Part shown: positions 30,807 to 52,845 of the stretch, piece after piece
Layout: every line of letters starts with the position of its first letter
Numbering within the stretch: the stretch's first letter is position 1
Virus record (IMG/VR): IMGVR_UViG_3300049855_000348
Coordinates: 156,490-220,489 of that record
Length of the DNA: 64,000 bases
Strand: one strand, 5' to 3'
Notes under the pieces: generated by a model
The model's database searches: none
The model's input: only the letters and a program-made list of their open reading frames with translations
Told to the model about the DNA's origin: nothing
Translations under genes and position numbers: made by a program

Positions 30807-31304
30807 ATGCCGGTCACGCTCCCATCCCCGATCCTCTACAGCGCCCTGACCATGCTTCAGGACACGGATGAGAACGTCATCCTCCAGCGCCTGTACGACC
30901 GTGATGAAGCCCTACTGGCCGCCTTCAACGCCCTCAACGACATCCGTGAAGACCTGATTGCCCAGTTCTCCCGCTTCGACGATATCGAAGCCCGTATCCG
31001 CTCGATCGGCAACATCATCAACGCCATCATCGCAGCGTTCTATCAGGACATCGACGGTAACGGCATCGTTCCGGACAACTACGCCTTCTTCAACCAGTTG
31101 ATCGCCGACCTGAAGTTGAACATCAATGCGATCAACGCCGTCAGTGGTGGCATCATCAACTTCCTTGGTGTTCAGACCGCTGTGACGCCGGTTGCTGAGC
31201 ATCTGGCCCGTCTCCAGGGGCTCGACAATCTGATCAAGGAAAAGTTGAACTACATCTACAGCAAGTGGGACATCGATCCGAACGACGATCTACTCTCGCT
31301 GTGA
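30807..31304 (+). CDS. Putative structural coiled-coil protein
   Basis: Late hexamer TAACTA 4 nt upstream. Confidence 0.7.
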   Translation: MPVTLPSPILYSALTMLQDTDENVILQRLYDRDEALLAAFNALNDIREDLIAQFSRFDDIEARIRSIGNIINAIIAAFYQDIDGNGIVPDNYAFFNQLIADLKLNINAINAVSGGIINFLGVQTAVTPVAEHLARLQGLDNLIKEKLNYIYSKWDIDPNDDLLSL

Positions 31305-31477
31305 CGCAGGACGAGATCTACAAGATCTTCGCCAAATTCGTGGTGGGTAATCCAACCGCAAAAGCCGACGCTGTTGTAAAACACGTGCTATCGGCTTCTG
31401 GTGGATTCGGTGATCCGGTAACCATCAGCATCTGGTACAGTCAGTGGAGAATCATCTGGACCGAGTTGGCTCTCTAG
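31301..31477 (+). CDS. Hypothetical small protein
   Basis: GTG overlaps the upstream stop. Confidence 0.55.
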   Translation: MTQDEIYKIFAKFVVGNPTAKADAVVKHVLSASGGFGDPVTISIWYSQWRIIWTELAL

Positions 31478-31504
31478 TTGACAGCGACATTTTGGTCTTA
31501 TATT
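31478..31504 (+). promoter_or_regulatory. Early promoter with operator
   Basis: TTGACA-GCGACATTTTGGTCT-TATATT; ATG is 34 nt from the first T, as in the other leaderless copies. Confidence 0.75.
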
Positions 31505-31511
31505 TCCAATC

Positions 31512-31856
31512 ATGAAGCTCGCCGTTGTTGGAAGCCGTGAATTCTCGAAAATAGATGAGGTTCCCCGCCTTCTTTCAATGCTTCACGCACAGCGTCCTCT
31601 CACCAAAATCATCACTGGTGGCGCTGATGGCCCAGACAAGCAGGCTGAGGAGTGGGCCAAGACCAACGGTGTCGAGTGTGTTGTTCATGCAGCCGATTGG
31701 AGTCTTGGTGAGGGTGCTGGCATCAAGCGCAATGGCACCATCATCGACGAGTCTGAAGCTCTGATGGCCTTCTGGGATGGAGAGTCCGCTGGCACCCTAG
31801 ATTCAATCTGTCGCGCCTCCAAGAAGAAGCTCCCAATGCAGGTGATTCTCGCATGA
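31512..31856 (+). CDS. SLOG-superfamily (YspA/DUF2493-like) protein
   Basis: AVVGSREF, IITGGADGPD, AGIKRN, AFWDGESAGT. Confidence 0.85.
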   Translation: MKLAVVGSREFSKIDEVPRLLSMLHAQRPLTKIITGGADGPDKQAEEWAKTNGVECVVHAADWSLGEGAGIKRNGTIIDESEALMAFWDGESAGTLDSICRASKKKLPMQVILA

Positions 31857-32395
31857 ACTCTGTTCAGGTAAACGATGGTGGACTCAAGTTCAGCGAGAAG
31901 AACGCAATTCTCAGTCACTGCGGAACCTATCGCTACGTGTTGACTCGTCGTGTCCCCCAGGTGATTCGCTGGGTGAAGCCGGCGCTGTTTATCATGCTGA
32001 ATCCCAGCATCGCTGATGCTGAAGTTGATGATCCGACCATCCGTCGTTGCTGGGGTTTCTCCAATAGCTGGGGTTGCACCTCGCTGACCGTAGTCAACCG
32101 CTTTGCTCTGCGCTCCACGGATCCAGCAGGTCTGTATCATCACGCTGATCCCTATGGACCAGAGAATGATCGTCACCTTGAAGAACAGATCGCTGCTCAT
32201 CGTCTTGGTGTGATTGTCTGCGCCTGGGGTGCTGAGCCGATCGCCACCGCATCACCCTGGTTCGAGCCTTTCATCCAGAAACTCAAGGAAGCCAACGCTC
32301 AGTGCCTCGGCATGACCAAGAATGGCAGCCCCAAACATCCGCTCTACCTCAAGAAGACCCAAGATCTCATACCTTGGAAGGGAACGGCAGAATGA
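31853..32395 (+). CDS. DUF1643 family protein
   Basis: YRYVL, FIMLNPSIAD...DDPTIRRC, AWG, G.TK.G.PKHPLY. Confidence 0.85.
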   Translation: MNSVQVNDGGLKFSEKNAILSHCGTYRYVLTRRVPQVIRWVKPALFIMLNPSIADAEVDDPTIRRCWGFSNSWGCTSLTVVNRFALRSTDPAGLYHHADPYGPENDRHLEEQIAAHRLGVIVCAWGAEPIATASPWFEPFIQKLKEANAQCLGMTKNGSPKHPLYLKKTQDLIPWKGTAE

Positions 32396-33579
32396 CCGAC
32401 ATCTGTAAAATTTGTGGCGATGACCACCTGCCCGAACAGGCTGATCAGATCCACAAGGAGTTGATCGCTACTCTGCGTGCCAAGACCAAGGTGATGATCA
32501 CCGATGATCACGTTACCGCCATCCATTCATCGGTGATCGGTTTCTACCACACCATCACCCCTGCTCAGGTGGTGTTGAAGTGTGATCCGAAGAAGCCTGA
32601 GTGGAATGCGCTCAGACAGATGCATGAACGTATCCGCGAAGGGTTGAAGGCGCTTTTCACATGATCGGCGGATTGGTGACCAGTGTTTCGATCAACCTCA
32701 AAGCCGTGTTGGTAACCGTCACCGACAAGGGTGAGAGCATCGTCCGTGGTCTGCCACTGAACGACAAGACTCGCTGTATTGGCATCGGTGACGCCATCTG
32801 GTGGCAAGGAAAGAGATACTTCTGGACCCCTCAGGGGTCGTCACGCACGAAGCAGGGCAAGGACTTCGATATCATCATCGAGTGGGATGAGGTGCCGGTA
32901 TGACCGTTGAAGTCCTTCCTCTCATCCTTCCTCCCAAATGGCCACACGGCTGGCCTGAATGTGAAGAACACAAGATCGTCAAGGCGGCGATCAAGTTCGG
33001 TGACAAGGTCTACGTTGGATGGCGGCATATCCACATCCTGGATCACCTCCGTCACGAAGGTCATGATCGTCTGAGCTTCGGTTCTCAAGAAGACCAGGGC
33101 TTCATCAACAATCTCGGATGGTTCTTCGATCGTTATATGTCGGCCAAGATCGCCTCGGGAGCACGGCAATGCACCTGGAGTCAGATCAGGGCAAAAACGT
33201 TACTGAGTGAAGATCTCTGGGATGAAGAGGGCACTCCTCACCCGCCGAAGCCGGCATTCGACTCGAAAGACCTCGGTGAAAGGGGATATTACCGGTGATC
33301 TGCAAGCAGAAGACGATTCGTTGGAAGTTCATCATGCACCTCAGCTTTGACAAAGCTCATGAGATGCACTGCAAATCGAAGTACCGTGGTCGTGAGATCG
33401 GTTGGGTGCAAGTCACCCCTCGTAAGAGAAGTGGTGAATTCGGCAAACCGAAGAGCTACTTCATGGATCTCACCAAAGATCCAAAGACCAGGACCGAACA
33501 CACAACCAAGACCTCGCTGCTGACCGACATCGACAATGAACTCTCGATTGTAAAATCCATCAAGGGTAAAAAGAAATGA
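32392..33579 (+). other. Four coupled small hypothetical ORFs (32392-32664, 32661-32903, 32900-33298, 33295-33579)
   Basis: Chain of ATGA/GTGA overlaps. Confidence 0.65.
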
Positions 33580-34148
33580 TTCATTACATCGGCTTCCATG
33601 GCCCAAAGCGTGTGGGTAAGGACTACGTTGCTTCACACCTCGCTGAGGTGTTGAGAGAACACAAACTTCATACCACCATCGACCGCATCGCTCGTCCTCT
33701 CTACGAATGGGCTCAGGCGATCACCGGTCTTCCCGATGAATACCTGATGGGGCACGAGAAAGACACCCCTCTCAAGAACTCAGTCAACATCCCGCCAGAA
33801 CTGGTTGGCCATTCACCTCGGAAGATCCTGCTCGATCACGGCATCTGGGTGCGCAAGACCTACGGTGAACAGTTCCTTTTCAACTGTCTGAAGGCTCGGG
33901 CAGAATCGTTGAGTGAAGATCATGACCTGTGGGTGATGATCGCCGACGTGAGGACCGACGCTGAAGCCTCTCTTTGTGATGTCGTCTTCGAGATCTTACG
34001 TGAGGGCTACGTCTACGAGGGTGGTGTCACCGAGAGCAAGCTCACCGTTCCGGTCATCGACATCCATATGAAGACGAACGTCTTCCACCCGGTCCATCAG
34101 TTTCAGGAAATCTTCAAACAACACCTCGAACCGTTGATCAAGAACTGA
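33576..34148 (+). CDS. Deoxynucleoside monophosphate kinase (T4 gp1-like)
   Basis: IGFHGPKRVGKD, IARPLY, SPRKIL, IADVR..AE. Confidence 0.8.
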   Translation: MIHYIGFHGPKRVGKDYVASHLAEVLREHKLHTTIDRIARPLYEWAQAITGLPDEYLMGHEKDTPLKNSVNIPPELVGHSPRKILLDHGIWVRKTYGEQFLFNCLKARAESLSEDHDLWVMIADVRTDAEASLCDVVFEILREGYVYEGGVTESKLTVPVIDIHMKTNVFHPVHQFQEIFKQHLEPLIKN

Positions 34149-34165: not shown

Positions 34166-35200
34166 ATGCAAAACACCATCATCTGCCCCGTTACCGGCGA
34201 CACCATGGTCGATGCTCTGGCATCGATTGATCCCGACCTCATCAACCAGAAGTGCCTGGACCACGGTTTCGTGAAGACCCTGGACTGCATGCCTCGTCTG
34301 ATCCCGATCGAAGCGAAGGGTTGCGACTTCGCCTTGGCTGACGCTGCCCGTATCAGCTACCAGAAGGGCACCCGCAAGGCCAACAGCGACACGGCTCTGA
34401 TCGACCACCTGATCCGCAACGAACACACCAGCCCCATCGAGATGGGTGAGTTGAAGTTCCACATCCGCCTGCCGATCTTCGTCATGCGCCAGCACGTTCG
34501 TCACCGCACTGCCTCCCTCAACGAGGAGTCAGCCCGCTACAGCGAACTGGCCGGCGATTTCTACATTCCTGAGCCTCAGAACTGGGCCATGAACACCGCT
34601 GCCAATAAGCAGGCTACGGTGAAATACGACATGCCCCAGGCAGTGGCCGACAAGCTCCACCAGTGGATCAAGGACCACAACGAGGATTCCTACCGTCTCT
34701 ACCAGCAACTGCTTGACGGGTCGGAGTCGGCTGACGCTGACATCGTCGTCCCTGGTATCGCCCGTGAACAGGCTCGCATGGTCCTCGGGGTGAACATCTA
34801 CACCCAGTGCGTCTGGAAGTGCGACCTCAAGAACCTGCTGCACTACCTGCGCCTGCGCACCGACAAGCATGCTCAGTCGGAGATCCGTGTCTTCGCTGAT
34901 GCCATCGCTCGGGTCGTAGCGGCCCTGTTCCCGGCCTCCTGGAACTCCTTCAAAGACAATTTCATCGAAGGGGTCCGCTTCTCCAGTGTGGAACTGGGGG
35001 TCGTTCGTTGGATCGACAGCATCCCTCGTGTCACGACTCCAGACACCTTCCAGGATATGCTCAAGGGTCTCGGTTGGAGCAAGACTCGTTGGATGGAGTT
35101 CAAGAAGAAGCTCGTCCGCTCCGGTCTGGGGAATGTCAGTGCAGAACAACTCGACCACCTGGAAGCTCTGGCTTTCCCGCCCGCGCCTGCCAAGGTCTGA
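34166..35200 (+). CDS. thyX: Flavin-dependent thymidylate synthase
   Basis: AARISY, HTSPIE, RHRTASLNEESARY (RHRx7S), AREQAR, LRTDKHAQSEIR. Confidence 0.95.
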   Translation: MQNTIICPVTGDTMVDALASIDPDLINQKCLDHGFVKTLDCMPRLIPIEAKGCDFALADAARISYQKGTRKANSDTALIDHLIRNEHTSPIEMGELKFHIRLPIFVMRQHVRHRTASLNEESARYSELAGDFYIPEPQNWAMNTAANKQATVKYDMPQAVADKLHQWIKDHNEDSYRLYQQLLDGSESADADIVVPGIAREQARMVLGVNIYTQCVWKCDLKNLLHYLRLRTDKHAQSEIRVFADAIARVVAALFPASWNSFKDNFIEGVRFSSVELGVVRWIDSIPRVTTPDTFQDMLKGLGWSKTRWMEFKKKLVRSGLGNVSAEQLDHLEALAFPPAPAKV

Positions 35201-40565: not shown

Positions 40566-40892
40566 ATGCCGCTGAGCAAAGCTCAGATCCAGATTCTGAC
40601 CAACCCTGCTGTGCGTAAGCGGTTACCCGCCAGGGCGTCAGACTTCAAGTACGCCGACACCCTGCTCAGGGATGTGGGAGAGGGATGTCCTCGACTTCCA
40701 GCAGTCTGGACCAGGGTCTTCTCCAATCTCAGCCCAGCGGATGCTGCGTGGCTGAACCAGACCTTTCCCGGCCATCAATTCGCAGGTGTCGACCCCAAGG
40801 CACCACCACAGCCTTTGCCGCCGTTGGTGAAGCCGTCGAATATCGTTCACCGTGCGATTGAAGTCCTCCAGTCGTACAAGAAAGCCACATGA
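40566..40892 (+). CDS. Putative late protein
   Basis: MPLSKAQIQ...; TAACTA 5 nt upstream. Confidence 0.65.
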   Translation: MPLSKAQIQILTNPAVRKRLPARASDFKYADTLLRDVGEGCPRLPAVWTRVFSNLSPADAAWLNQTFPGHQFAGVDPKAPPQPLPPLVKPSNIVHRAIEVLQSYKKAT

Positions 40893-43800
40893 GCCTCGAT
40901 CGACCACTGTTCTCGACTAGCTCGGTGTATTCGTTGATCGAACTCAACGAAGTCATCACCCGCTACGCTCAAAACGATGAGCAGATGAAGGCTGTCGCCG
41001 AATCGCTCGAACAGATTCTCACCACCGTCTCGGCTGGTCAGATCCTGTCGCCGGCTGATCTCCAGGCTGCGGTCGATGCGATCTATGATGCCGGCAGTCC
41101 GCTGGCCCGTGCCTACATCGTCTCGCCCCCTTCTCGCTCACTGCAAGAGATTGCAAACCTGATGACGATCTCGCCACTGAGCGATCTCATCGAGGGAACC
41201 AAGCTCAACCCCACTGCCTGGATGCCCATCCTGCGCGTGTTCAGCATGCTCAAGGGCATGATCTACCTCGTCGAGAATGGCCCGAGCTACGACGCCGATC
41301 CGGTCTTCGTGAAAGATGGCTCGTTCTTCTTCACGTCGATCACTGATGGCAACAGCCCTGAGGGTCATCTCCTCTGTAGCGAAAATGGCACCGTGCTCGA
41401 AGTCGGTGGACCGATCTACCGTGTCCTGCCTGATGGCACTGATGCGATCACTCTGATCGAGTTTATGCTTCGCCGATTGGAGCAGCAACGCCTGCGCCAG
41501 ATCTATCGTTTGGGCTGCTTCGAGGCATCGGTCGATGCCAAGTACGACTCTGGCAGCAGCTACGATTTCATCGACAAGGTCTTCACCACCGGTGCGGGTC
41601 CTGAATTCAATCAGCGTTTCCCCTGTGGCTACACCGCAGCCGGTGAACTGCTGTTCCTGCGTTCGCAGGCTGGCAAGTACCGTGGTGCCGATCTCAACCT
41701 CTTCCGCCCTGGCTACAGTGCCCAGTCTGGCGTCGAAGATCGAGTCATCATCGGTGAGTCGACGGTGCAGACCCCGATGGGTCTCTTCCATATTCCGCAG
41801 TGCGTTGTGCGCTGGGATCACCTGCTGACCGATGAAGATCGTCAGCCGAATGCTGATGGCGATCCAGTCGTCTTCGTTGGCCTGCGCTTCAAGGTCAGCA
41901 TGCTGAAGCGTACCTCCTACGCCAATGGCGTAGCAGAGCCTGATGCCATCGTTGACGTTGGCACTGGTGATGGCGTCGTACTGATGAAGAGAAATGCCTT
42001 CGGCAGCGAGATCCCGAACTACCCAACGACGTTGACTGGTACCCAAGCTGAGAAGTTCCCAGCCGTCGCGGCTGAGGGTGTTGAACATGGTCGTGTGATC
42101 GGCTTCATCCAAAAGGATGGCCTGAACACCTTCGCTCAGTTCTTCCAGGTCTCACTCGACGTGGCGATCGTCAAACAGCACGGTCGTGCCTTCTTCGAGC
42201 AGGGTGTCGGCTACGCAGCCGGTCAGGTCGATGAGATCGGCAAGCTGGGTGAACTCGGTACCGACATCGACGTGGCCCCATGGCGTGCCTTCGGTACCGG
42301 TCCACGGCATGTGCTCGAAGTGGTGCAGACCGATGCCACGCTCGCCGGTGAAGGCTTCGTGCTTGATGTCGACCAGGGTGTCTTGAAGCGCGAGGAGAAG
42401 ACCTCCGACACTGCTGAATGGGAAGTCATCCTGCCCATCGGCCTGTCGCTGATGAAGAATCAGAAGCCCTTCAGCTTGGGTAACCTCAACGGCTGTTCGA
42501 CCCGCTTCACGGATGCCTGGGCAATCCGTCAGGTGACCAGCGTTCAGAAGTCCCTCAACACGGTCATCTTCGACGATGGCAATGGTGAGCCCGAAGCCTT
42601 CCCCCAGGACTTCATCGGTGCTGAGGTGACCTTCTGGCATGCCGACCGCACCAGCAGCGTGACCACCATCGTGGAGCGTGTTGGCGACCGTCTGGCTCGG
42701 ATCCCGACCGATGTGCTGGCCAAGGTCACCGCAGGTGATGTGGTCACCATCGACCGCCGTAAGCCGTCGAGCAGCTTCGATGGTGCCTACGAGCGTGAGG
42801 CCGGCATCACCAACTTCGTCGACCTGCGTCTGCTGGTACGCCGGATGGTCGATACCGAGGTCGTCCCAAGCTCGGAAGGGCTCCTCTCCCCCAGCCCGTC
42901 ACCAGCCCAGCCCTGGACCGCCCTGGTGCGTTCTAAGCCAGCTTCCCTGGTTCTGGCTGCCATGGCCCCATTCGCCGACAACGTGGCTGCAATCGGCAGC
43001 AAACTGCGTTGGCACTATGCCCAGCAGTTCATCGCCCTGGCCAGCCAGCGGCAGGACATGGTCGACATCACCGGCACCACAGCCGAGCTTCAGTCTTACC
43101 TGCTGCGGTGGGTTCAGAACTATGAGGCTAATAAGAACCACGAGTGGATCGTCGGCGAGGGCTCGATCATCCACTGGCCTGCCAAGAACCCGGTGACCAA
43201 GGTCAACCTGCGCCGATACAGCCCGCCCATCCTCCCTGGGGTGGACGACGGGATCACCATCGAAGAGGTCGCAGGCTGGGGTCCGGTGCCGGTGCTGACC
43301 AAGTACCTCCGCTCCGGTGACAACCAACGCTACCCGCTGCGCATCATCAAGCCGTTGGTCTTCGCCTCCGAGCGTTCCTTCTCGATCCCTGGCCACACCA
43401 AGCTCGCCGGCAGCTTCCGCTTCCAACCCGAGGACACCTGGATCGTTGACGAGGTGATAACCTTCGTCCTCTATCAGACCCAGAACCGCAATGGCCTGAT
43501 CCAGGAGGTGATCCTTGGTTCGTTCGACCTGCGTTGGCAGGAGGCATCCAACTTCTCAAACGCCACGGGCGTGTTCCGTATCGATGACGAGGCGAGCTAC
43601 GATCCGACGACTGGCTTCCTGAACATCAACTACAACCAGATCATCGACTTCACGGTTGAAGAGGCTGGTCGTCTGTCGGTCACTGCCGTCTATCATGACC
43701 TGACTGAGGTTCACCCGATCTACTCTTTCAACCTCGCCCAGTTCGGCCTGAACGTCAGCCATCTGGCCGATGCCAAGGTGTTCTCGATCGTGGACGGCAA

Positions 43801-44758
43801 GGTCGAAGAGAAGGCCGACGTGCTGCGCCTGGAAGGCATCTCGATTTCCAATGGTACGGTCTATATTCGCTTCAACCGTGATGACATCTTCAAAGCCATT
43901 GCTGTGCGTGGCATCTTCAAGACCAAGTGGGTGCTGCGCAACATCGCCTGGATCACCATCACCAACGTTTCGTACGACGAGAACAACATTCCGATCTCTG
44001 TGGAATACGATGCTCAGAACGTGCGTGATGCGATTACCATGTCGACACTGCTGGAAGCAGATAAACGCTGCCGTCAGGTCTACATCCCTTGTGCCACGAA
44101 GTATGGCTGGATCGATGTTGGCCAGACCAACATCCACACCGAGGCCATTCCTCAGAACGATAGTCCACGTTTCGGCTTCTTTGAACTCGACAACATCAAA
44201 GGCATCGACACGGCTCTGTTGATCGATGGTCCGGTCTACAATGCCTTCAAACCGGTCGACATCGACTATCGCTTCCTGGAGAAGTACGTCGACTCAACGG
44301 ATCTCGAAGAGATCAAATCAGTGGCCATCGTTCGTCACATCGTCACCGGCGCACGTCGCGTGTTCGTTGGTGTCTATCGTGAGGCCAACGGCGGCGGTGG
44401 AGTCACTGCTCTCAACAACGAGATCACGCTCGGCACATTGACTGATCAGGACGTTCTGTTCATCAACGATTCGCTGCTGGATTCGTCCTGGGTGCTGGAC
44501 TTCGCTGGTGTCATGACCACGGCACCTGATGGTGGCGTTGGTGACTTCGGTGACTCGAAGCTCATGCTGGCCGGTTACTGGTATGCCGGTCACTCGCTGG
44601 AGGACCGTGCTGGATCCTTCACACGCTTCCGCCCTGACACTGCTCAGTTCAACAGTCCGACCAAGAATGCCGACTTCTATCGTCTCGGCGATGTACCGAT
44701 GTCCTTCCTCTACCGTGGCAACACTCTGCTGTGGTCTGATCACACGAGACCGGCGTGA
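40889..44758 (+). CDS. Large putative virion structural protein (baseplate/tail-like)
   Basis: 1289 aa, acidic and beta-rich composition, in the late operon; no family recognised. Confidence 0.7.
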   Translation: MSLDRPLFSTSSVYSLIELNEVITRYAQNDEQMKAVAESLEQILTTVSAGQILSPADLQAAVDAIYDAGSPLARAYIVSPPSRSLQEIANLMTISPLSDLIEGTKLNPTAWMPILRVFSMLKGMIYLVENGPSYDADPVFVKDGSFFFTSITDGNSPEGHLLCSENGTVLEVGGPIYRVLPDGTDAITLIEFMLRRLEQQRLRQIYRLGCFEASVDAKYDSGSSYDFIDKVFTTGAGPEFNQRFPCGYTAAGELLFLRSQAGKYRGADLNLFRPGYSAQSGVEDRVIIGESTVQTPMGLFHIPQCVVRWDHLLTDEDRQPNADGDPVVFVGLRFKVSMLKRTSYANGVAEPDAIVDVGTGDGVVLMKRNAFGSEIPNYPTTLTGTQAEKFPAVAAEGVEHGRVIGFIQKDGLNTFAQFFQVSLDVAIVKQHGRAFFEQGVGYAAGQVDEIGKLGELGTDIDVAPWRAFGTGPRHVLEVVQTDATLAGEGFVLDVDQGVLKREEKTSDTAEWEVILPIGLSLMKNQKPFSLGNLNGCSTRFTDAWAIRQVTSVQKSLNTVIFDDGNGEPEAFPQDFIGAEVTFWHADRTSSVTTIVERVGDRLARIPTDVLAKVTAGDVVTIDRRKPSSSFDGAYEREAGITNFVDLRLLVRRMVDTEVVPSSEGLLSPSPSPAQPWTALVRSKPASLVLAAMAPFADNVAAIGSKLRWHYAQQFIALASQRQDMVDITGTTAELQSYLLRWVQNYEANKNHEWIVGEGSIIHWPAKNPVTKVNLRRYSPPILPGVDDGITIEEVAGWGPVPVLTKYLRSGDNQRYPLRIIKPLVFASERSFSIPGHTKLAGSFRFQPEDTWIVDEVITFVLYQTQNRNGLIQEVILGSFDLRWQEASNFSNATGVFRIDDEASYDPTTGFLNINYNQIIDFTVEEAGRLSVTAVYHDLTEVHPIYSFNLAQFGLNVSHLADAKVFSIVDGKVEEKADVLRLEGISISNGTVYIRFNRDDIFKAIAVRGIFKTKWVLRNIAWITITNVSYDENNIPISVEYDAQNVRDAITMSTLLEADKRCRQVYIPCATKYGWIDVGQTNIHTEAIPQNDSPRFGFFELDNIKGIDTALLIDGPVYNAFKPVDIDYRFLEKYVDSTDLEEIKSVAIVRHIVTGARRVFVGVYREANGGGGVTALNNEITLGTLTDQDVLFINDSLLDSSWVLDFAGVMTTAPDGGVGDFGDSKLMLAGYWYAGHSLEDRAGSFTRFRPDTAQFNSPTKNADFYRLGDVPMSFLYRGNTLLWSDHTRPA

Positions 44759-44895: not shown

Positions 44896-47229
44896 TTATG
44901 ATAACATCTTGGCTAGCTGTTCATCCGACGGCATCTTGTTGACGTTGAGTGGTGTCACTCGTGGTCCAACTGAGATATGTTGGTCACCGATGCGAACCTT
45001 GCGACCGTTGCCGATGTAGGCGGTAGCTGAACCAGTGCTGTGATCGGTTGCCCAAGACAGCGTCCGCTTCACAGCCTTCTCTACAGCACGGCGAGCCGCA
45101 GCCATCTTGGGGTTGCGAACCACTGCTGGCTTGCGGGCAGACTGGAAATGTACGTCCTTCGAGAGTTTCCCGACAGGGTTCTGTTTCGAGATGGATTGCG
45201 CTGGTGCTGAATTCTGTTGTGAAGTCGGAAGATCATAGTTCCGACCGATGATCATCTCGTCGACCTTGTCCCAATCTGGGTGAGGCGACTGACCGGTGAT
45301 GTTGTGAAATCTTACGAACTGTTCATCAGCGTCATCAGCGTCACTGCGCTTGGCGACATACTCAGTCTTCCACATCTCTTTCAGATGGCGATTGTAGTTG
45401 AGGATGTCGCATGCCTCGATCAGTCGCGGCAGGTCCTTGCTGATGTTGACATCGAAGTTGGCAAACGAACCTTCCATCATCACCACGTAACGCTTCTCAA
45501 ACAGTTCGGCCATGCCGTTGATCATGTCATCCAACTGGTGATCGTAGAAGCCTTCGGCACAGGTGCCGATCATGATCGCCTTGGCAGCTTCGTAGACTGG
45601 GCTGTCCTGGAGCTTCTTCAATTCTGTTGGCTTGATGGCAGCCGACTCCTCGCCGGCCTTCATCGAGTCACGAACCTTCAAAGCCTCGGTCACACCACGT
45701 TGAAAGTGGGGAATGCCATGACGACGTTTCACTTGGGCATAGAATTCGTTAGCAGCCATCCAAACAGAGACGTGTCCCCATTCGGTCTTTGGCTCGGTCC
45801 AATGCCAGTGGATCGTACCGAACAACTCCTTCAGGCCACGGCTGACATGAGGTGCGGTGTTGACCACATGATCGAGATCAATCTCAGAAGCCTGTCCGTA
45901 TGCCTTGAGACGACGATGAAGCTCGATCAGCACATCGCGCCACACAGCGGCACGTGGGTCGATTCCACGGATCGGCTTCCACTCGCTTCTTGGCTTCACA
46001 TCATGCGCCAGCTTGGCAATGTGACTGACACCATCGTCGAGTGTCTGATCACGTCCAATGCTGTAATCGATCACACCGCCTTCGGTGTAAGCAGACACCC
46101 CGGTCGTTGCTCTGATATGTTGGCCTTCCTGGCGATGTTTTGGCTTGCCAGGAACTTCTCCCTTGTCTGTGAACTTGATGCTGGTCGACACTGCCCGTCC
46201 ACGCTTGGTGATGGCCACGCGAGGCATGCTCAGGTTGACCTTGCCGGTGGTTGGAAGTGGATTGGTGAAGGCTTGAATGCCGCCGTGAACTGCACCCAAG
46301 CGAATGATCTGATCACGTGGATCGATGGCGTTGATGACACGACTGATGACCTTGCGTTCACTACGCTCTGGGTTCCAGACTGAAGGATTATATTCGCCCT
46401 TCTTCTGTTGAGCGGTTTGGAACACGTCGATGATGTCGAAAGCATCGGAACGCATGAAGAATGCTTGTTCTGGTTCACCGTGGTAGACCACGGCATCCTC
46501 GGGTCCCTTGGCAGTGTCGATCACGACACTGATTCCAGCCTTCAGGAAGCGAGCACGCTGATCATTGTGGTTGAGAACACGCTTGGCGAATAGCTTGTAA
46601 CCGTTGACCGTGTTGGCCAAATCAAAGCCTGATTGAGAGGCAAAGAAGAACGCCTTCGGCACCGTCACGGGATGTGGCGACACTTTGGAAGCAGTCATCT
46701 CCCAGATGTCTTGCCAGAATTTTTCGACCGGTACGTCATCTCCCTGCGGAAGGACCTCCATCACATTGAGGATCTTCAACGCAGCGTCTTTGGTAAGAGT
46801 CTGAAGATCGAGTACCTTAGCGTTCGGTCGTAGTTTGATGACGCGCAGGTACCGAGAGTTGCCGGCGTAAGGAATACCGGCCTGCTCACTGATCACGAAT
46901 TCGAGCGGGTAGGTGTAGATGGCAGCCGGGTCAGAGTGGTTGGGCTTGGTCCACAGTGTAGTGTCAGGATGAGGGGTACGGGCAGCTTTGAGTCCGAGCT
47001 TTTTACGGTTCGTTGTCCAGTACCGTTCCTCGTAACCCGGTTCTGGACTTCTACCATATTGCGAGCCTACCATTCGCTTGTCATCGGTCGACGAGGCGAA
47101 GTTGGTGAACTGCACGAACAGGTCTTTGCGATGTGCCTGCGGCGTGTACTTGGCGACGAACTCACGCCAGCCCTTGGTGGACACATCAGAGACCAGAACC
47201 TCAGTGACGAGTTGATTGTAGAGATCCAT
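44896..47229 (-). CDS. Putative virion-packaged protein with an ART-like domain (paralogue A)
   Basis: KPNHSDPAAIYTYP...YLRVIKL...VVID.AK....V.Y.GEPEQA; N-terminal LVTE. Confidence 0.7.
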   Translation of the reverse strand: MDLYNQLVTEVLVSDVSTKGWREFVAKYTPQAHRKDLFVQFTNFASSTDDKRMVGSQYGRSPEPGYEERYWTTNRKKLGLKAARTPHPDTTLWTKPNHSDPAAIYTYPLEFVISEQAGIPYAGNSRYLRVIKLRPNAKVLDLQTLTKDAALKILNVMEVLPQGDDVPVEKFWQDIWEMTASKVSPHPVTVPKAFFFASQSGFDLANTVNGYKLFAKRVLNHNDQRARFLKAGISVVIDTAKGPEDAVVYHGEPEQAFFMRSDAFDIIDVFQTAQQKKGEYNPSVWNPERSERKVISRVINAIDPRDQIIRLGAVHGGIQAFTNPLPTTGKVNLSMPRVAITKRGRAVSTSIKFTDKGEVPGKPKHRQEGQHIRATTGVSAYTEGGVIDYSIGRDQTLDDGVSHIAKLAHDVKPRSEWKPIRGIDPRAAVWRDVLIELHRRLKAYGQASEIDLDHVVNTAPHVSRGLKELFGTIHWHWTEPKTEWGHVSVWMAANEFYAQVKRRHGIPHFQRGVTEALKVRDSMKAGEESAAIKPTELKKLQDSPVYEAAKAIMIGTCAEGFYDHQLDDMINGMAELFEKRYVVMMEGSFANFDVNISKDLPRLIEACDILNYNRHLKEMWKTEYVAKRSDADDADEQFVRFHNITGQSPHPDWDKVDEMIIGRNYDLPTSQQNSAPAQSISKQNPVGKLSKDVHFQSARKPAVVRNPKMAAARRAVEKAVKRTLSWATDHSTGSATAYIGNGRKVRIGDQHISVGPRVTPLNVNKMPSDEQLAKMLS

Positions 47230-48107
47230 CAGAACTCGCCGAAGAGGTCATCGACTGACTCGGCCAGCGTCTCACGCTTGGCGACCGAACCAGCACTGCG
47301 GATGAGGTTGATGACCTTCTCGGCCCGGTCACCCACCTGCAAGCGCCACGCCGTGCGCTGGAGGCTGTTGGCTGCCCTGGGATAGTCGAAGCGTTCCAAG
47401 TGATCCCGGGCATCCAGGTTGGCGAAGCCGGTCGGCCCGAGGTTGTAGATCAGGTCGGTCACCGCCAACTGGACCTCCTTGGGTTGCTCCTCGAAGGTCT
47501 TCATGACCCGAGGACCAGCCTTCAGGGCATCGGCGACCTTGGCGGCGAACAGAGCCTCGATCTCTTGGTCGGTCAGACGGCGTTGGCCGGTTTTGACGGC
47601 GGTGTAGTTGATGCCCAGGTCGCGCAGGTACCGAGCCGCACCGGGCTGATCCAGGTTGAAACCGACACCAATGGTCCGCTTACCGACCGAGTCTCGGTAG
47701 ACCTTCGCCCGGCGACCCTCGTTGGGGTGGATGAACTCCTTGGCCTCTTCCAGGCTCAGGGATTCCCTTTGGAAGGCCGTATCTGGCCCGGGGGGTGTCT
47801 CGGTAGGGGGCGGCGGGTAAGATGGCTGTGTGGGCTTCTGGTGCGTCGCAGTGGCCGGTTCCTTGGCTTCCACCGGTGGCTGGTAGCTCTCCTTGTTGCC
47901 GAGAGCCTTGGCCGCCAGCAGGCCGAGGAGGACGCCAGTGCTCGCCATGGCGGCACGCTTGGTCCACGGAAGATCGGCCTCGGACACCATAGGAGCGAAT
48001 AGGCTATCGACTGATTGGCTGAGTCCAACCGATTCCTTGACGATTCGGCGGGGTGGCCGGCGCACCTCCGTTTGATGAATCCACAGCGGTTGTGCTTTCG
48101 CAGTCAT
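47229..48107 (-). CDS. GH24 (T4-lysozyme family) muramidase with N-terminal extension
   Basis: E-X8-D-X5-T triad EGRRAKVYRDSVGKRTIGVG; YNLG; W..QVGDRA; start at ATG 48107. Confidence 0.88.
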   Translation of the reverse strand: MTAKAQPLWIHQTEVRRPPRRIVKESVGLSQSVDSLFAPMVSEADLPWTKRAAMASTGVLLGLLAAKALGNKESYQPPVEAKEPATATHQKPTQPSYPPPPTETPPGPDTAFQRESLSLEEAKEFIHPNEGRRAKVYRDSVGKRTIGVGFNLDQPGAARYLRDLGINYTAVKTGQRRLTDQEIEALFAAKVADALKAGPRVMKTFEEQPKEVQLAVTDLIYNLGPTGFANLDARDHLERFDYPRAANSLQRTAWRLQVGDRAEKVINLIRSAGSVAKRETLAESVDDLFGEF

Positions 48108-48112
48108 GCATC

Positions 48113-48118
48113 TATCTA
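48113..48118. promoter_or_regulatory. Bidirectional putative late promoter hexamer TATCTA/TAGATA
   Basis: 4 nt from ATG 48123 (+) and 5 nt from ATG 48107 (-). Confidence 0.55.
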
Positions 48119-48122
48119 AGTC

Positions 48123-49820
48123 ATGCACCGCGTTGATCTGACCGACCTTGCCAGGATCTCTGAAGCTCACTACTCGGATGTCTTCGGTGCAGCGATGCGG
48201 CGGTTCCACGACAAGTACAAGGACGCCGGTCCCGAGTTCTTCGTGAATTTCAACCCGGTGGTCAGCGATCCCCGGGACAAGACCATCCTTGGCCAGCAGA
48301 GCGATATCCCGGCACCCAAGAGCGGGCCGGACGCTGGGCACCCCCTGTTCAAGAAACCCGACCACAGCGACCCGGTGGGCACCTACGTCTACCCTGCTGA
48401 GTACGTCGCCAACCACTGGCATGACCTCCAGTACGGGTCAGACATGGGCAACCTGCGGGTGCTCAAGGTCAACACCGATCCCGAACACACACTGATCCTC
48501 AGCGACATGACGCAGGATCAGTTCCTTGAGGCAATGAAACGCCTCAACCTGGAATTCCATGTCCGTGATCACGGCTGGATCTACACCCGGTCGAAGCGTG
48601 ATGCGATTGCGATCTATGAAGCGATCTTCGAGTGGGAGGCACCGTCGGCACCCCATCACCGGGTGAACTCCTACGGCAAGGTGCTCTTCAAGCTCATCCA
48701 GAACGACTACCGCTTCGAGCCCAACGTGCCCGAGGAGGATGAGGATGCCGATGAGGAGGAGGGCGAGAACTGGAATGCATTCATGGAAACTGGGTTGTCG
48801 AAAGACAGCAAATACTCCTCAGCCGGTGAGTTCAAATACGAAGGTCAATTGAAGGTCCAGCACGTCACTGAACTGACGCAGATCAAGCAGACTCGTCGTC
48901 TGTTGAAGGCCAAGTATGAAGTGGTCATCGACCGGGCCAAGACTCCGCTGGAGGCTACGATCTACCCGTCCGAGCCAGAGCAAGCCGTCTGCCTGACCAA
49001 GCGGTCCTACGAGGTGGTCGACACCTACAAGATTCAGAACGCTGCTCAGGGTGACCAGACCGTCAGACCAGAACGTCTCGACCGTGAGAAGCTGACCAAG
49101 AAGGCTGGGTGGTTGATCGCCAAGACCATGGGTGAGTCGATCACCGAGAACGTCAGCCATTTCTTCAACCGCGAAGGAGTCAACCAGCCCGGTCGAATCA
49201 GGAATCTCCACATCCTGCGGAACTGGATCTCCACCGAACGTGTTGAGCAGCACCCCATCTCGTCATGGGATCCCACTGGTCAGATGACGGCTATCGATGC
49301 CTGGGTAACCACCAAGGGCAACCTGATTGTGGTCGATACAGTTGTCGCCAGGGCCGAGACCGTCGCCGATCCACAGGCCAAAGCACGCACTCATCAGTCA
49401 GTCTCAAAGGCTCGCATCCGTCCCGGTGAGGATCAGCAGGCGATCACTGACAACCTCACCAGCTATGTCGACTCGGCGATGGACAAGTCTGAGCATCGCA
49501 AGTTCGGCGCTCACAACACCATCTCTTTTGCGATCGGTCTGGTCACCGCTGCGGCACAACCAACGTTCATCAGAACCAGGGCGAAAGAGAGCCTGTCAGA
49601 TCTGCCGGCGAAGGTTCAGGAGGCGTTGCACAAGAACAGCGCCACTGCACCCTTCAAGCGGATCACCAACGCTCTGTTGGAAGAGTTCGTGAAAGCAGCC
49701 AAGAAGAAGGTCGCTTTGGTCAAACCACACGCAGATTCAGCAGCGAGTACATCCGCTGGAAATCCTCCGACAGCCACACCAGCGGCACCGGGTGATACTT
49801 CGGCGCATCCAACACCATAA
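48123..49820 (+). CDS. Putative virion-packaged protein with an ART-like domain (paralogue B)
   Basis: KPDHSDPVGTYVYP...NLRVLKV...VVID.AK....I.Y.SEPEQA; N-terminal RISE. Confidence 0.7.
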   Translation: MHRVDLTDLARISEAHYSDVFGAAMRRFHDKYKDAGPEFFVNFNPVVSDPRDKTILGQQSDIPAPKSGPDAGHPLFKKPDHSDPVGTYVYPAEYVANHWHDLQYGSDMGNLRVLKVNTDPEHTLILSDMTQDQFLEAMKRLNLEFHVRDHGWIYTRSKRDAIAIYEAIFEWEAPSAPHHRVNSYGKVLFKLIQNDYRFEPNVPEEDEDADEEEGENWNAFMETGLSKDSKYSSAGEFKYEGQLKVQHVTELTQIKQTRRLLKAKYEVVIDRAKTPLEATIYPSEPEQAVCLTKRSYEVVDTYKIQNAAQGDQTVRPERLDREKLTKKAGWLIAKTMGESITENVSHFFNREGVNQPGRIRNLHILRNWISTERVEQHPISSWDPTGQMTAIDAWVTTKGNLIVVDTVVARAETVADPQAKARTHQSVSKARIRPGEDQQAITDNLTSYVDSAMDKSEHRKFGAHNTISFAIGLVTAAAQPTFIRTRAKESLSDLPAKVQEALHKNSATAPFKRITNALLEEFVKAAKKKVALVKPHADSAASTSAGNPPTATPAAPGDTSAHPTP

Positions 49821-52171
49821 AGCCGAGAGCATCGTTCCAACAGCCGGCGTAGAGGCACCAACGCTTGGCGCACTGGCTTTCAACGAGCCACCAGATGGCT
49901 GACATGCAGTTGTGACGAGCACAGGATGCAATGATCCGATCACGTGGATCCAATTCAGTGCTCAGACCGGTGAAGCCGTTCTGACCGGTGAGTAACTTTA
50001 CACCACCATCGACCATCAGGTGGTAGAAGATGTCGGCGATCTCTGCGCCTTCTGGTCCGTTCTCTTCGCAGTAGCCACGACGAGTCAGATACTCTTCGAT
50101 ATCTGGCTCTCGTTGCGCTTCTGTAAATCCAGGAAGATAGGCACCAAGGACGACGAGACTCATAGCGTCTAATTACGGTGCTGATGCTCGGCGAATAGTC
50201 GCAATTTTTCTTCCGCTTCTCGTTGCATTTTGACTGGGTACCACTTCAGACACTCCGAGCCGAATGACTCTGGCGGAGCCTCCCTGTTCAACCAGTCTTT
50301 GATGTCTTGGTAGTTGCGTGTGGTGTAGTGTGGATTGTTCAACACCTTCTCGTAATCGTTCTCGAAGCATGCCTGAAGAAAGAGATCCTGAGGGATCTGT
50401 CCGAACGCAATCCAGGCAGCGATCCAGTAGTGAAATTCTGGGAGGACCGGAGTCTTCTTCAGAGAATGGATGACGTGGTGGTATTTCACCGTTGGTGTAC
50501 CTTGACCAGATCATCGCGGAGCTTGAACAGTTCACGACGAACTTTGATGCTGGTCCAGAGCACCCACGCTTGAAGCGAGAGAAGGATGCTGGTGATCACC
50601 CATGTGATGGTTGCAAGCACTGGGTGATCATTGGTGAAGAAGGTGAGGCCACCGAGTGCCAACAGAACGGTGGGTGGGAGAGCCTTGATCGTTTCTTTGG
50701 TCACCTGCCAGAACGTTGGGCGCTTAGCTTCACGGATTTCTTTGAGAGCATCTTTGATCAGATTGGCGGCGTTGGTTGCCATGGCTTCTCTCAGTGGACG
50801 ATGGGGGTGACGACGCCAGCCTTCTTGGCTGCGGCCTTCTCTTCACGGGTCATGCGGCGGTAGGAGCCACAACCCGTGCGGACCAGGGTGGGCTTGTTGG
50901 GCAGCCACTTACGGATCTGGCTCTCGTAGTAGGTTTTCGGTGCATTGTGATTCCACGATGCGACACAGGTTCGCTTCTCCTTGTCAATCGTGTGAACCTT
51001 GATCGACCAGATGCCGAGCGTGCTGAGCTTAGTATTGCCCATCTTATACGAATGGCAGTCGTAGACGACGGAATTCTCTTTCAGGCTCTCGAACTTCATA
51101 GAGTCCTCAGTTTTCAGATGGGCTTGTTTGAGATTTCTTTCCTGGTTTCCCATTCTTGATATCTGGATTACAGGTGCAGATACCATTTGGTTTCAAACCT
51201 GGACAGTTGTCATCATGATAAACTGTGACGTGTGTAACAGATCCAGGTTTCAGTAAACCAGCCTTTATGATTTTTTCGATATAGGATTCTTTTGGTTTTT
51301 TACTCACAGTACCTCCAGCAGCGGGATATGGTTTTCGAGGGAGACACGGACCTTCACTGGTCCTTTGGCTTCTTGGTAGAGCTTGAGGAATGTCGCGGCG
51401 AGTCGAGTGGTGACCATGACATGGACACCACCAGCATTGTCGGGCAGCCATTGGTCGACCACATACGCAGCAGCTTTCGCAGCGGCCTTGCCGATATTTG
51501 GCCCTGGGGTGAGAGTTATGGTGAAGGGGGTCACGCCTCGACCCGTTTTGCCTTGGCATTAGACACGCCGTAGTCAACGCATGCCTGTTTGGCCTCGATC
51601 AGAGTTTTTCTGGTCGAATAGCTGGATCCGTTGATGGAAATCACCCAACCTTCTTTTTGCTTCTTGATCAGATATCGGTTCGATCCGATATCTGCACAGT
51701 AGTAAGCACCGTTCACGGTATCCCAATGCGCAGTCCACAGGAACCGTACCGGTGGGTTGAGCAGCTTCTCAGCGTTCGAGATAGCCGTGTGGAAGCCAGG
51801 AAATGCTGCTCCGTTGATATAGGCACGGTGCGAGAAGTTGACGAGTTCTTGCAGGACCTCTCTGGTTTTCTTGTTCATTTGAAGACGATCTCCAGAATGG
51901 TCGGCTTGGGAGTGTAGAGCGGCATCCGAATGGAACCGGGAACCTTTGGTGGGCACCCACCATTGAGTCCTGAGAACTCGGTCGCACACCTCTGTGTTGC
52001 GAGTTTCGGCATCCACAAAGTGACGCTCAGAATCACCACCTTGTGAGGAAGGGGAAAAGAGATCTTCCCCTTCCTGATGGTGCATTCCTTCGTGTGAGAT
52101 TTCATCTCAGGCAGCGAAGCGAGACTCGTGGATCCCTTGGGCAGGTAGTCGACCCGGCAGTGAACCTTCAT
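49720..52171 (-). other. Cluster of small early hypothetical ORFs (49720-50163, 50169-50489, 50486-50782 membrane, 50791-51099, 51107-51307 HDDxC..CxC, 51304-51534, 51531-51878, 51875-52171)
   Basis: Coupled minus-strand ORFs downstream of the 52818 promoter. Confidence 0.6.
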
Positions 52172-52785
52172 GCGTACCACGAGCAGTAGGTCTCGCGGCC
52201 ATCCCACAGGTGGGCGCTCTTGCCGTAGGTGTACTTGGCCGAGTTGCCGATGTGGAAGCTGTCCTGGCTGACCAAGGTGACTTCGATCACCTCGCCTCCG
52301 GTCGATTCGAGATCGGCGGTGACGTAGGCCGACATGCCCGAGCAGCCCTTGGTGATCTTGTAGCCGATGGGCTGGACCAAGAGCTTGGTGCGGCTCTTAC
52401 GACCGACGACCCTGAAGAAGTCGACGTTCGTCTGTTCCCAGCCCCACGAGTGGACGAAGATCGTGCCGTCGGCGTGCTTGCTGCTGTCGATCGCGGCCTT
52501 GGAGGCTTTCTTCTCAGCCTTGTAGGCGGCGACGCGGTTGGCGATGGCGTCGGCATCTTCGAGGAACTTGGTCACGAAGGCATCGCGCTGTTCGACCGTG
52601 CGGAAGTTGTGGAAGAAGTCGGCCTTGTTGCGCTTGCCAAGAAAACCCTTGGCCAGGATGACCTGCTTCCCGCCCCGATCTTCGATCCAGGCGTAGGCCA
52701 CGCCGTGACCCGTCTTCGAGTCGAGCTTGGTGGCGTTCTTGTCAGCCGAGGGGAGGAAGTATTCGCGGGTGAGGGTGATGGCCAT
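52168..52785 (-). CDS. Conserved phage early protein
   Basis: SWGWEQTNVDFFRVV motif; AAGGA RBS. Confidence 0.8.
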   Translation of the reverse strand: MAITLTREYFLPSADKNATKLDSKTGHGVAYAWIEDRGGKQVILAKGFLGKRNKADFFHNFRTVEQRDAFVTKFLEDADAIANRVAAYKAEKKASKAAIDSSKHADGTIFVHSWGWEQTNVDFFRVVGRKSRTKLLVQPIGYKITKGCSGMSAYVTADLESTGGEVIEVTLVSQDSFHIGNSAKYTYGKSAHLWDGRETYCSWYA

Positions 52786-52817
52786 GGGTTTGTCCTTTGC
52801 TGTGCTTTGACCAACGA

Positions 52818-52845
52818 AGTATAGCGACCTTTTGGTCGCTGTCAA
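52818..52845 (-). promoter_or_regulatory. Early promoter with perfect operator
   Basis: TTGACA-GCGACCAAAAGGTCGC-TATACT. Confidence 0.88.

Follow-up and report, generated by a model that had tools for sequence, protein, structure and literature searches.

Paired genes for predicted ADP-ribosyltransferase-like proteins, candidate head-packaged effectors, flank the lysozyme gene of a distant T4-superfamily phage

The DNA analyzed here (the window) is a stretch of 64,000 nucleotides that forms the final 64 kb of a 220,489-bp IMG/VR phage record, IMGVR_UViG_3300049855_000348, which is rated complete. Two genes in this window, encoding the proteins that we call P0001 and P0002, stand in mirror image on either side of a lysozyme gene, and both proteins belong to a large family whose shared domain very probably adopts a fold like that of the ADP-ribosyltransferases (ARTs), as judged from predicted structures. 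The account that we favor, to which we give a little better than an even chance, is that P0001 and P0002 are ART-fold enzymes that are brought into the prohead by a capsid-targeting sequence (CTS) at the N terminus, trimmed there by a gp21-type prohead protease, and injected into the host, where they would act as effectors that use nicotinamide adenine dinucleotide (NAD+). The features of the two genes, in coordinates of the window and with lengths in amino acids (aa), are as follows.

44896..47229, minus strand: P0001 gene, 777 aa, from the open reading frame (ORF) and its translation; propeptide, ART-like, mid, and helical domains, a disordered linker, and a small C-terminal beta domain
47200..47229, minus strand: candidate capsid-targeting peptide or propeptide of P0001, codons 1-10 (MDLYNQLVTE), with a predicted cut after Glu10
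46315..47199, minus strand: P0001 domain resembling the ART superfamily, aa 11-305, from AlphaFold2, fold matches, and conservation
46000..46308, minus strand: P0001 alpha/beta mid domain, aa 308-410, with motifs TKRGR 341-345, H365-R366, and E383-x-G385
44899..45957, minus strand: C-terminal half of P0001, helical at aa 425-650, with a disordered linker at 656-701 and a small beta domain at 707-777 (AlphaFold2 secondary structure)
48123..49820, plus strand: P0002 gene, 565 aa, from the ORF and its translation; 14-aa peptide, ART-like domain, mid domain, and a short Ala/Pro-rich tail
48123..48164, plus strand: candidate propeptide of P0002, codons 1-14 (MHRVDLTDLARISE), with a predicted cut after Glu14
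48165..49127, plus strand: P0002 ART-like domain, aa 15 to ~335 (family profile 217 bits, E 2e-65)
49461..49727, plus strand: P0002 mid domain, aa ~447-535, including KSEHRKFGAH, from iterative search

By sequence comparison, P0001 and P0002 are true paralogues, with a similarity far above chance: BLASTP aligns aa 8-156 of P0001 with aa 12-143 of P0002 (31% identity, E 3e-11) and, collinearly, aa 219-297 with aa 251-326 (33% identity, E 1e-10). A search of the genome with the shared-domain profile finds these two copies only, and an acidic insertion of ~85 aa lies within the ART-like domain of P0002. The original prediction, which was made from the sequence letters, had described such a mirror-image pair of paralogous ORFs around a lysozyme, and both ORFs are as it described them. 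The motifs that it had seen in both proteins (FV[QN]F, KP[ND]HSDP..Y.YP, LRV[IL]K, and VVID.AK...EPEQA) coincide with the columns of highest conservation in an alignment of 149 family sequences, and the short N-terminal segments that it had noted, ending in LVTE and RISE, are present and are kept in the orthologues of each protein. Its further motif, K..HR..G.H, finds no backing in pairwise BLAST (E 12) but falls inside a conserved mid domain in which H365 is near-invariant. The same layout, with a P0002-like gene on one strand and the lysozyme and a P0001-like gene on the other, occurs in three related metagenomic contigs, and contig L005 carries a 44%-identical P0002 orthologue in the equivalent divergent position. 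This mirror-image pairing is restricted to the clade of the window phage; other family members are single.

The family itself is far larger than this clade. An exhaustive phmmer search with P0002 at E<=1e-3 recovers at least 206 clusters at 50% identity; ten full-length homologues share 37-65% identity with P0001, and the orthologues of P0002 are 39-54% identical to it. The shared domain typically spans ~260-300 residues and begins at residue 5-15 of proteins of ~500 aa; in P0001 and P0002, owing to inserts, it spans 300-340 residues. Next comes a mid domain of ~100 residues, with near-invariant G344 and H365: iterative searching from the P0001 region finds this domain in 134 of 160 collected proteins, P0002 orthologues among them, and an iterative search from the C-terminal part of P0002 recovers the mid domains of 88 collected proteins at the position of the P0002 mid domain. 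Beyond the mid domain the family varies, and the C-terminal half of P0001 is confined to its own clade (13 sequences).

Pfam (E<=1) and PHROG scans of P0001 and P0002 yielded no match, and sequence and profile searches of the PDB with the family yielded chance matches only. We also screened 50,697 GenBank phage records with five query proteins (P0001, P0002, P0158, P0120, and P0033). Megablast and tblastn searches of these records with the region, P0001, P0002, P0158, and P0120 found no homologue, and the P0033 query found a single one, gp444 of Salicola phage SCTP-2. This protein (locus L046; MF360958.1, 364793-366193) is 466 aa long, begins MRLTNLIE followed by SNIKDIY, and is encoded two genes upstream of gp442, a gene for 3,456 aa. 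Family members occur in twenty IMG/VR loci, for the most part as single copies and on contigs of 140-600 kb. In the resources searched there is no description of the family, its conserved site, or its CTS-like tag; head-packaged phage ARTs are already known as a kind.

An ART-like fold had been proposed for the pair on the strength of motif order, with AlphaFold and Foldseek as the check, and that check, now run, bears the proposal out: the ART superfamily is returned almost exclusively from the PDB, AFDB, BFVD, and the ESM Atlas. AlphaFold2 modeled the domain alignment with a predicted local distance difference test (pLDDT) score of 88.9 and a predicted template modeling (pTM) score of 0.85, and full-length P0001 with scores of 87.5 and 0.74. 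When the model was compared with 48,161 PDB chains by VIA-align, ~35 of the top 45 matches were ART-superfamily proteins (Z 4-6), a list that takes in diphtheria toxin (Z 6.0) and its homologues, RES toxins, ParT, PARP1-4, MbcT, NatT, exotoxin A, cholix, AcrIF11, Arr, and scabin; the pseudo-PARP folds TASOR and PARP13 were also matched, and the top match, at Z 7.1, was an ejection-protein chain of the cyanophage A4 pre-ejectosome. Foldseek against the PDB agrees with this list. Against AFDB clusters it returns ART-PolyVal-like, RES, DUF3990, and PARP proteins, and against BFVD polyvalent proteins, MuF fusions, ART-PolyVal-like proteins (E 1e-4), and, at E 7.6e-14, a homologue of 466 aa, the length of SCTP-2 gp444. 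Among ESM Atlas language-model features, ART-PolyVal makes up 45 of the 100 nearest clusters. At the level of fold, then, structure comparison finds the split beta-sheet core of the ARTs in the predicted domain, and the argument draws its weight from the return of the same superfamily from four libraries rather than from any single score. Fold matching of the mid and C-terminal domains of P0001 gave generic matches only, none of them informative.

It is decidedly unlikely, in our judgment, that the resemblance to ARTs is merely topological and that the domain is a different enzyme, such as a metal-dependent hydrolase with a His/Asp/Glu set. Consistent with such an enzyme, every Z-score is below 8, the TM-scores for named ART matches reach at most ~0.4, and no sequence or profile link to any ART family is significant. 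Four independent libraries and two aligners nevertheless converge on one superfamily and on almost nothing else, a Gly-h-Tyr strand and a late acidic residue occur in the order typical of ARTs, and a Glu-Pro-x-Gln-Ile motif lines up with the x-Pro-x-Gln-Ile-Lys-Ser of ART-PolyVal.

Within this predicted fold we assigned the conserved site from secondary structure, alignment ranges, and motif comparison, and not from residue-level superposition. Across the 149 sequences, whose mean column identity is 19%, H98, D100, E252, and Q255 are invariant and P101, Y105, Y107, P108, R129, Q199, Q224, D238, and P253 are near-invariant, and both P0001 and P0002 retain every one of these residues; an invariant polar set amid so little overall identity is a pattern typical of an active site. 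Strand 1 reads L-[YF]-V-[QN]-F-T, and the column that we take as equivalent to the ART His/Arg holds Gln in 95 sequences, Asn in 41, His in 6, and Arg in 5 (Gln40 in P0001, Asn in P0002). A family-specific P-x-H98-x-D100-P precedes strand 2, and the second core strand, Gly103-h-Tyr105-x-Tyr107-Pro108, supplies the strand-2 Tyr of the ARTs (Tyr105 in 148/149). The invariant E252-P-(E/Q)254-Q255-(I/A) opens the penultimate core strand and is a candidate for the site of the catalytic Glu; E252-P-x-Q255 is aligned with the x-P-x-Q-I-K-S of ART-PolyVal in the sole region that hhalign aligns (probability 6%, E 0.006). The active site is apparently non-canonical for an ART, and NAD+-dependent transfer is plausible.

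A canonical strand-1 His/Arg appears to be missing, the pseudo-PARP folds of TASOR and PARP13 are among the structural matches, and IPI* of T4 works by binding, not by catalysis (PMC3012670); all of this would suit ART-fold proteins without catalytic activity, whose role would be that of internal head proteins, structural or associated with DNA, or else to bind or inhibit a host factor. We regard a dead fold as quite unlikely, given the invariance of H, D, E, and Q and the near-invariance of several further residues at 19% mean column identity, which looks like an active site, and given a recurrent linkage to NUDIX, NADAR, and NAMPT proteins.

The nearest named family, both in Foldseek searches of BFVD and AFDB and in the Atlas features, is ART-PolyVal (PF18760; Tox-ART-HYD2 clade). 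It shares with our family the C-terminal x-Pro-x-Gln-Ile signature, the Gly-aromatic-Asp strand, partner domains of the GNAT and NUDIX types, and a predicted role as a delivered effector (PMC5512222); it differs in that our family has no Pfam match and a domain of roughly double the length, into which helices and hairpins are inserted. The His-Tyr-Asp configuration of ART-PolyVal (PMC5512222) is not reproduced, Gln or Asn standing for His beside a family-specific His-x-Asp-Pro, and the column aligned to the Asp of the ART-PolyVal Gly-Tyr-Asp-Gly is Asp in 85 of 149 sequences and Ser in P0001. The Arg-Ser-Glu (R-S-E) pattern of Alt and VIP2 is likewise absent: there is no match to the Pfam family ADPrib_exo_Tox and no Ser-Thr-Ser in the family, whose structural neighbors are of the His-Tyr-Glu/Asp type (diphtheria toxin, PARP, ART-PolyVal) and not of the VIP2/C3 type. 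The domain is accordingly ART-like by fold and motif order yet departs from both ART-PolyVal and Alt/VIP2 at the level of sequence.

Diphtheria toxin and the PARPs match the split beta-sheet core over ~120-150 residues (Z 5-6) and have a Gly-h-Tyr strand 2 followed by an acidic residue at the start of a late strand, in the same order as our family; the strand-2 sequence G-h-Y105-x-Y107-P resembles G-F-Y-S-T of diphtheria toxin and G-x-Y-F-T-D of ART-PolyVal. Unlike these enzymes, the family apparently lacks the strand-1 His and carries large inserts, and the equivalence holds at the level of motif order. The best match to the domain as a whole is the cyanophage A4 pre-ejectosome chain (PDB 9k3a chain B; Foldseek E 1.9e-3, probability 0.99; VIA-align Z 7.1), a solved protein that resides inside the capsid and is ejected. 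That chain comes from a podophage core protein of >1,700 residues without sequence similarity to the family, and the match is loose, with a root-mean-square deviation of 5.5-7.5 A over ~170 residues, in a region that the A4 paper does not call an ART.

Residues 1-9 of P0001 are predicted to be disordered (pLDDT <50), and the fold begins at approximately residue 11; in P0002 the peptide MHRADLT.LA.[IL]xE is kept in the orthologues, and its Glu14 aligns with Glu10 of P0001. Across the family, a Glu stands at the boundary of peptide and domain in 115 of the 129 members with an N-terminal domain, P3 is Leu, Ile, or Val in 105 of those 115, and the length of the peptide before the domain peaks at 9-11 residues; among peptides of exactly 10 residues (n=24), position 4 is Tyr or Phe in 20 and position 8 is hydrophobic in all 24, and one other member begins MKTFQTFLIE. 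In T4 the CTS is MKTYQEFIAE (PMC8442874), in which positions 4 and 7 serve targeting and positions 8 and 10 serve processing by gp21 (PMC9026906). P0001 has Tyr4, Leu7, Val8, and Glu10 at these positions, and P0002 has a 14-residue variant that ends in Ile-Ser-Glu. The likeness to the CTS of the T4 internal proteins IPI-III lies in this peptide of ~10 residues, in which residue 4 is aromatic, residues 7 and 8 are hydrophobic, and residue 10 is Glu (compare MDLYNQLVTE with MKTYQEFIAE). The internal proteins differ in being small and basic, with mature parts unrelated to our family, and the peptide of P0002 differs in its 14 residues; targeting and cleavage in the family are predicted. Elsewhere in the genome, outside the window, a 478-aa ATG-initiated ORF at 86225-87661 (minus strand) has a second CTS-like N terminus, MAPFKHLLRE, and an 869-aa ORF at 31148-33757 (minus strand) starts MSDIDGIMNE.

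The genome encodes candidates for the machinery that such a peptide would call for. The window phage, which is uncultured, belongs distantly to the T4 superfamily, with the T4 order of large terminase, portal, gp21-type prohead protease, scaffold-like protein, and gp23-like major capsid protein at genome positions 137.6-149.2 kb; the protease matches Pfam Peptidase_S77 at 54.7 bits, PHROG matches in the genome include a head maturation protease, a portal, and a major head protein, the scaffold-like protein has 249 aa and is rich in Glu, Lys, and Ala, and the capsid protein shares 23-31% identity with its counterparts in cyanomyophages, Campylobacter phages, and KVP40-type phages. A gp21-type protease and a candidate for the scaffolding core on which T4-type targeting depends are at hand, and with the CTS-like peptide they make targeting to the prohead core and trimming after Glu the simplest reading. 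Within the scaffold-like gene, at genome positions 141878-142111 (minus strand), a Macro-domain match below threshold (14.3 bits, E 0.005) is probably spurious. A 128-bp repeat at the genome ends has been termed a 'direct terminal repeat'; more likely, the genome is circular or permuted and the repeat is an overlap left by its assembly.

We infer packaging, cleavage, injection, NAD+ use, and the target in the scenario that follows. P0001 would be translated from the late message of the lysozyme, here taken as the endolysin, and P0002 from the opposite strand. The N-terminal peptide would bring both proteins to the scaffolding core of the prohead, as the CTS does in T4, where the gp21-type protease would remove it after Glu10 or Glu14. 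The mature enzymes would remain in the DNA-filled head and enter the cell with the DNA, there using NAD+ to modify host macromolecules for takeover or counter-defense, as is thought for T4 Alt and for polyvalent ART domains. Like Alt, P0001 and P0002 are large proteins of a T4-type phage with an ART-superfamily domain, here a predicted one, and they share with Alt, by prediction, entry into the prohead, gp21-type trimming after Glu, and injection with DNA; Alt is processed at both termini (PMC9026906). They differ from Alt in lacking sequence similarity, any Pfam ART match, and the Arg-Ser-Glu triad, and in possessing an extra mid domain. The original prediction of functional analogues of Alt stands in part, sustained by the ART-like fold, the CTS-like peptide, and the protease, and altered by the non-canonical site and by the role of the muramidase, to which we return below. 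For the T4-like proteolytic processing that it envisaged, we can now name a gp21-type protease and a family-wide disordered [LIV]-x-E peptide resembling a CTS; cleavage, presence in the virion, and injection are inferred only.

The company that the family keeps fits the published picture of head-packaged effectors. Domain fusions join it to NUDIX (P0013 and a 980-aa protein of locus L034), to GNAT (P0118 and P0130), to a canonical ART-PolyVal domain (P0151), and to PcfJ with pentapeptide repeats (P0141); these members carry several effector domains on one polypeptide, in the manner of polyvalent proteins, and P0001 and P0002 have one recognizable enzymatic domain each. Among Pfam families in a survey of 142 neighboring ORFs from 14 non-redundant loci, NUDIX recurs most often, in four separate loci, and the others include NADAR, NAPRTase/NAMPT, Acb1, SAM lyase, GH108 and SLT muramidases, Gp23, and T4 gp15. 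ARTs and NUDIX proteins that are packaged in the head and encoded beside lysozymes are an established theme, and the published picture takes in ART, NUDIX, and NADAR proteins in the heads of myophages as well as polyvalent proteins (PMC9503650, PMC5512222). Searches of the window phage's own genome for NUDIX and ART-PolyVal found none. Two family members of other loci, L040:8369-11554 and L037:9671-11776, have extra N-terminal regions that start with canonical-looking ART strand-1 motifs (LYHGTT and IYRGVS), which suggests that they hold two different ART-type domains.

Several observations weigh against the scenario of packaged, injected ART enzymes. The single structural Z-scores of 5-7 lie within the range that the tool itself calls common (Z 7-8 being common without a clear match), and the ART Pfam models do not match P0001 or P0002. 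An hhalign comparison of the family profile with 14 ART-PolyVal domains is not significant (probability 6.3%, E 0.006), comparison with one ART-PolyVal sequence and runs in global and permissive local modes are not significant or are uninformative, and a word-based search with the ART-PolyVal piece of P0151 found nothing. The canonical strand-1 His/Arg, which contacts NAD+ in known ARTs, is apparently Gln or Asn, as mapped by alignment ranges and secondary structure. The boundary Glu is retained in 15 of 20 members in which the domain is internal, and a structural role for it is possible. The module lies ~55 kb away from the head genes, and the T4 late promoter, TATAAATA, is essentially missing across the genome, with no late-promoter motif recognizable, so that the timing of expression is not readable from promoters. 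SCTP-2 gp444, the one homologue found in a cultured phage, carries the annotation hypothetical.

Some of these observations would favor ART-fold enzymes that act in the infected cell unpackaged, like ModA and ModB of T4 or like counter-defense enzymes that consume NAD+ or degrade signals, with the [LIV]-x-Glu as part of the fold. The Glu of the internal copies and the distance from the head genes speak for such enzymes, as do the RES-type NADases among the fold matches and a genome-wide regular-expression scan for CTS-like N termini, whose 6 matches, against ~2 expected among 5,761 candidate starts, are not above chance. We consider unpackaged enzymes unlikely: the peptide is predicted to be disordered and agrees with the T4 CTS in its peak of length and its critical positions, a gp21-type protease is encoded, fusions with domains of polyvalent proteins point to delivered effectors, and the Glu before internal copies is equally compatible with release of modules by the protease. 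That internal Glu could, in other words, reflect either proteolytic release or a structural role.

We also offer a bolder conjecture, one that is improbable as a whole: that the family represents a catalytic type new to the ART fold, with a site of His98-x-Asp100, Tyr105, and Glu252-Pro-x-Gln255 in place of the classical triad, that its reaction is something other than ordinary protein mono-ADP-ribosylation, for example the modification of nucleic acids or the destruction of NAD+-derived immune signals, and that the gp21-type protease cuts polyvalent precursors at internal [LIV]-x-Glu sites inside the capsid. If this were true, the capsid protease would process polyvalent precursors, in proteins that have been thought to use metallopeptidase domains of their own.

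The lysozyme between the two genes has the following features.

47229..48107, minus strand: membrane-anchored GH24 lysozyme, 292 aa (Pfam Phage_lysozyme E 3.4e-9; PHROG endolysin 1.1e-13)
47898..47954, minus strand: Gly/Ala-rich hydrophobic segment of the lysozyme, AAMASTGVLLGLLAAKALG, from translation and kept in relatives
48108..48122, no strand assigned: spacer of 15 bp that separates the divergent start codons of P0002 and the lysozyme, from sequence

The claim that a lysozyme with a membrane segment separates the paralogues was sound, by the GH24 match and the hydrophobic segment, with one correction: alignment with three relatives makes 48107 the most likely start codon, and not one further downstream. 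Its segment AAMASTGVLLGLLAAKALG lies between a conserved basic extension at the N terminus and a Pro-rich linker after it, and the Glu-x8-Asp-x5-Thr spacing of T4 lysozyme is found in NEGRRAKVYRDSVGKRT, so that the protein combines GH24 spacing with a weakly hydrophobic N-proximal segment, as endolysins of the signal-anchor-release or tethered type do. Among the four families of peptidoglycan hydrolases that we searched for in the genome (GH24, SLT, Amidase_2, and M23), this lysozyme is the only representative, which makes it more likely, on sequence grounds, to be the signal-anchor-type or tethered endolysin of the phage. For the same reason we set aside the idea of a co-injected muramidase, and the earlier suggestion that the muramidase is delivered at infection gives way to a likelier role in lysis. 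The basic extension (47990-48107, minus strand) ends in hydrophobic-x-Glu, as PMVSE followed by A here and as PVTE or PMLE followed by G in relatives, and the lysozyme might itself be a substrate of the protease.

The stop codon of the lysozyme and the start codon of P0001 share one base, 47229, and this overlap, together with synteny in the three related contigs, supports co-expression of the two genes. If the lysozyme is the endolysin and P0001 is coupled to it, then P0001 would, indirectly, be expected to be made late, as proheads form. The spacer of 15 bp on the other side means that the promoters must sit within the adjacent coding regions. Translational coupling with the genome's only lysozyme, and the adjacency of a lysozyme to another family member in locus L025, might instead suggest that the proteins are lysis accessories, for instance regulators of the release of the endolysin from the membrane. 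We find this very improbable: most family members have no adjoining lysozyme, and the proteins are large, are without membrane segments, and have an enzyme-like site and fusions of the effector type.

Head-packaged ARTs have so far consisted of one studied example, T4 Alt, and computational predictions. To these the family would add >200 sequence clusters that Pfam and PHROGs do not detect and that are almost unrepresented among cultured phages, and it pairs a predicted ART-like fold with a capsid-targeting peptide of T4 style in jumbo phages and in distant relatives of T4. If the scenario of packaged, injected enzymes is true, the loading of effectors by way of the CTS would be both ancient and widespread, the conserved residues that we define could be used to probe a non-canonical ART site, the family would yield new candidate enzymes of host takeover or anti-defense, and its peptide would be a natural cargo-loading tag for phage engineering beyond T4 of E. 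coli.

Among ten scanned neighboring ORFs of the window, two have PHROG matches: the flavin-dependent thymidylate synthase ThyX at 34166-35200 (plus strand; Pfam Thy1 E 4e-48) and a 225-aa ORF at 52168-52845 (minus strand) that matches phrog_37844, of unknown function (E 1.2e-19). A 1289-aa ORF at 40889-44758 (plus strand) converges on the P0001 gene and is matched by neither Pfam nor PHROG. Its counterparts of 1284-1286 aa adjoin the module in related contigs, in one of them together with a 1157-aa neighbor, and the 1289-aa ORF and this neighbor possibly encode large virion or effector proteins.

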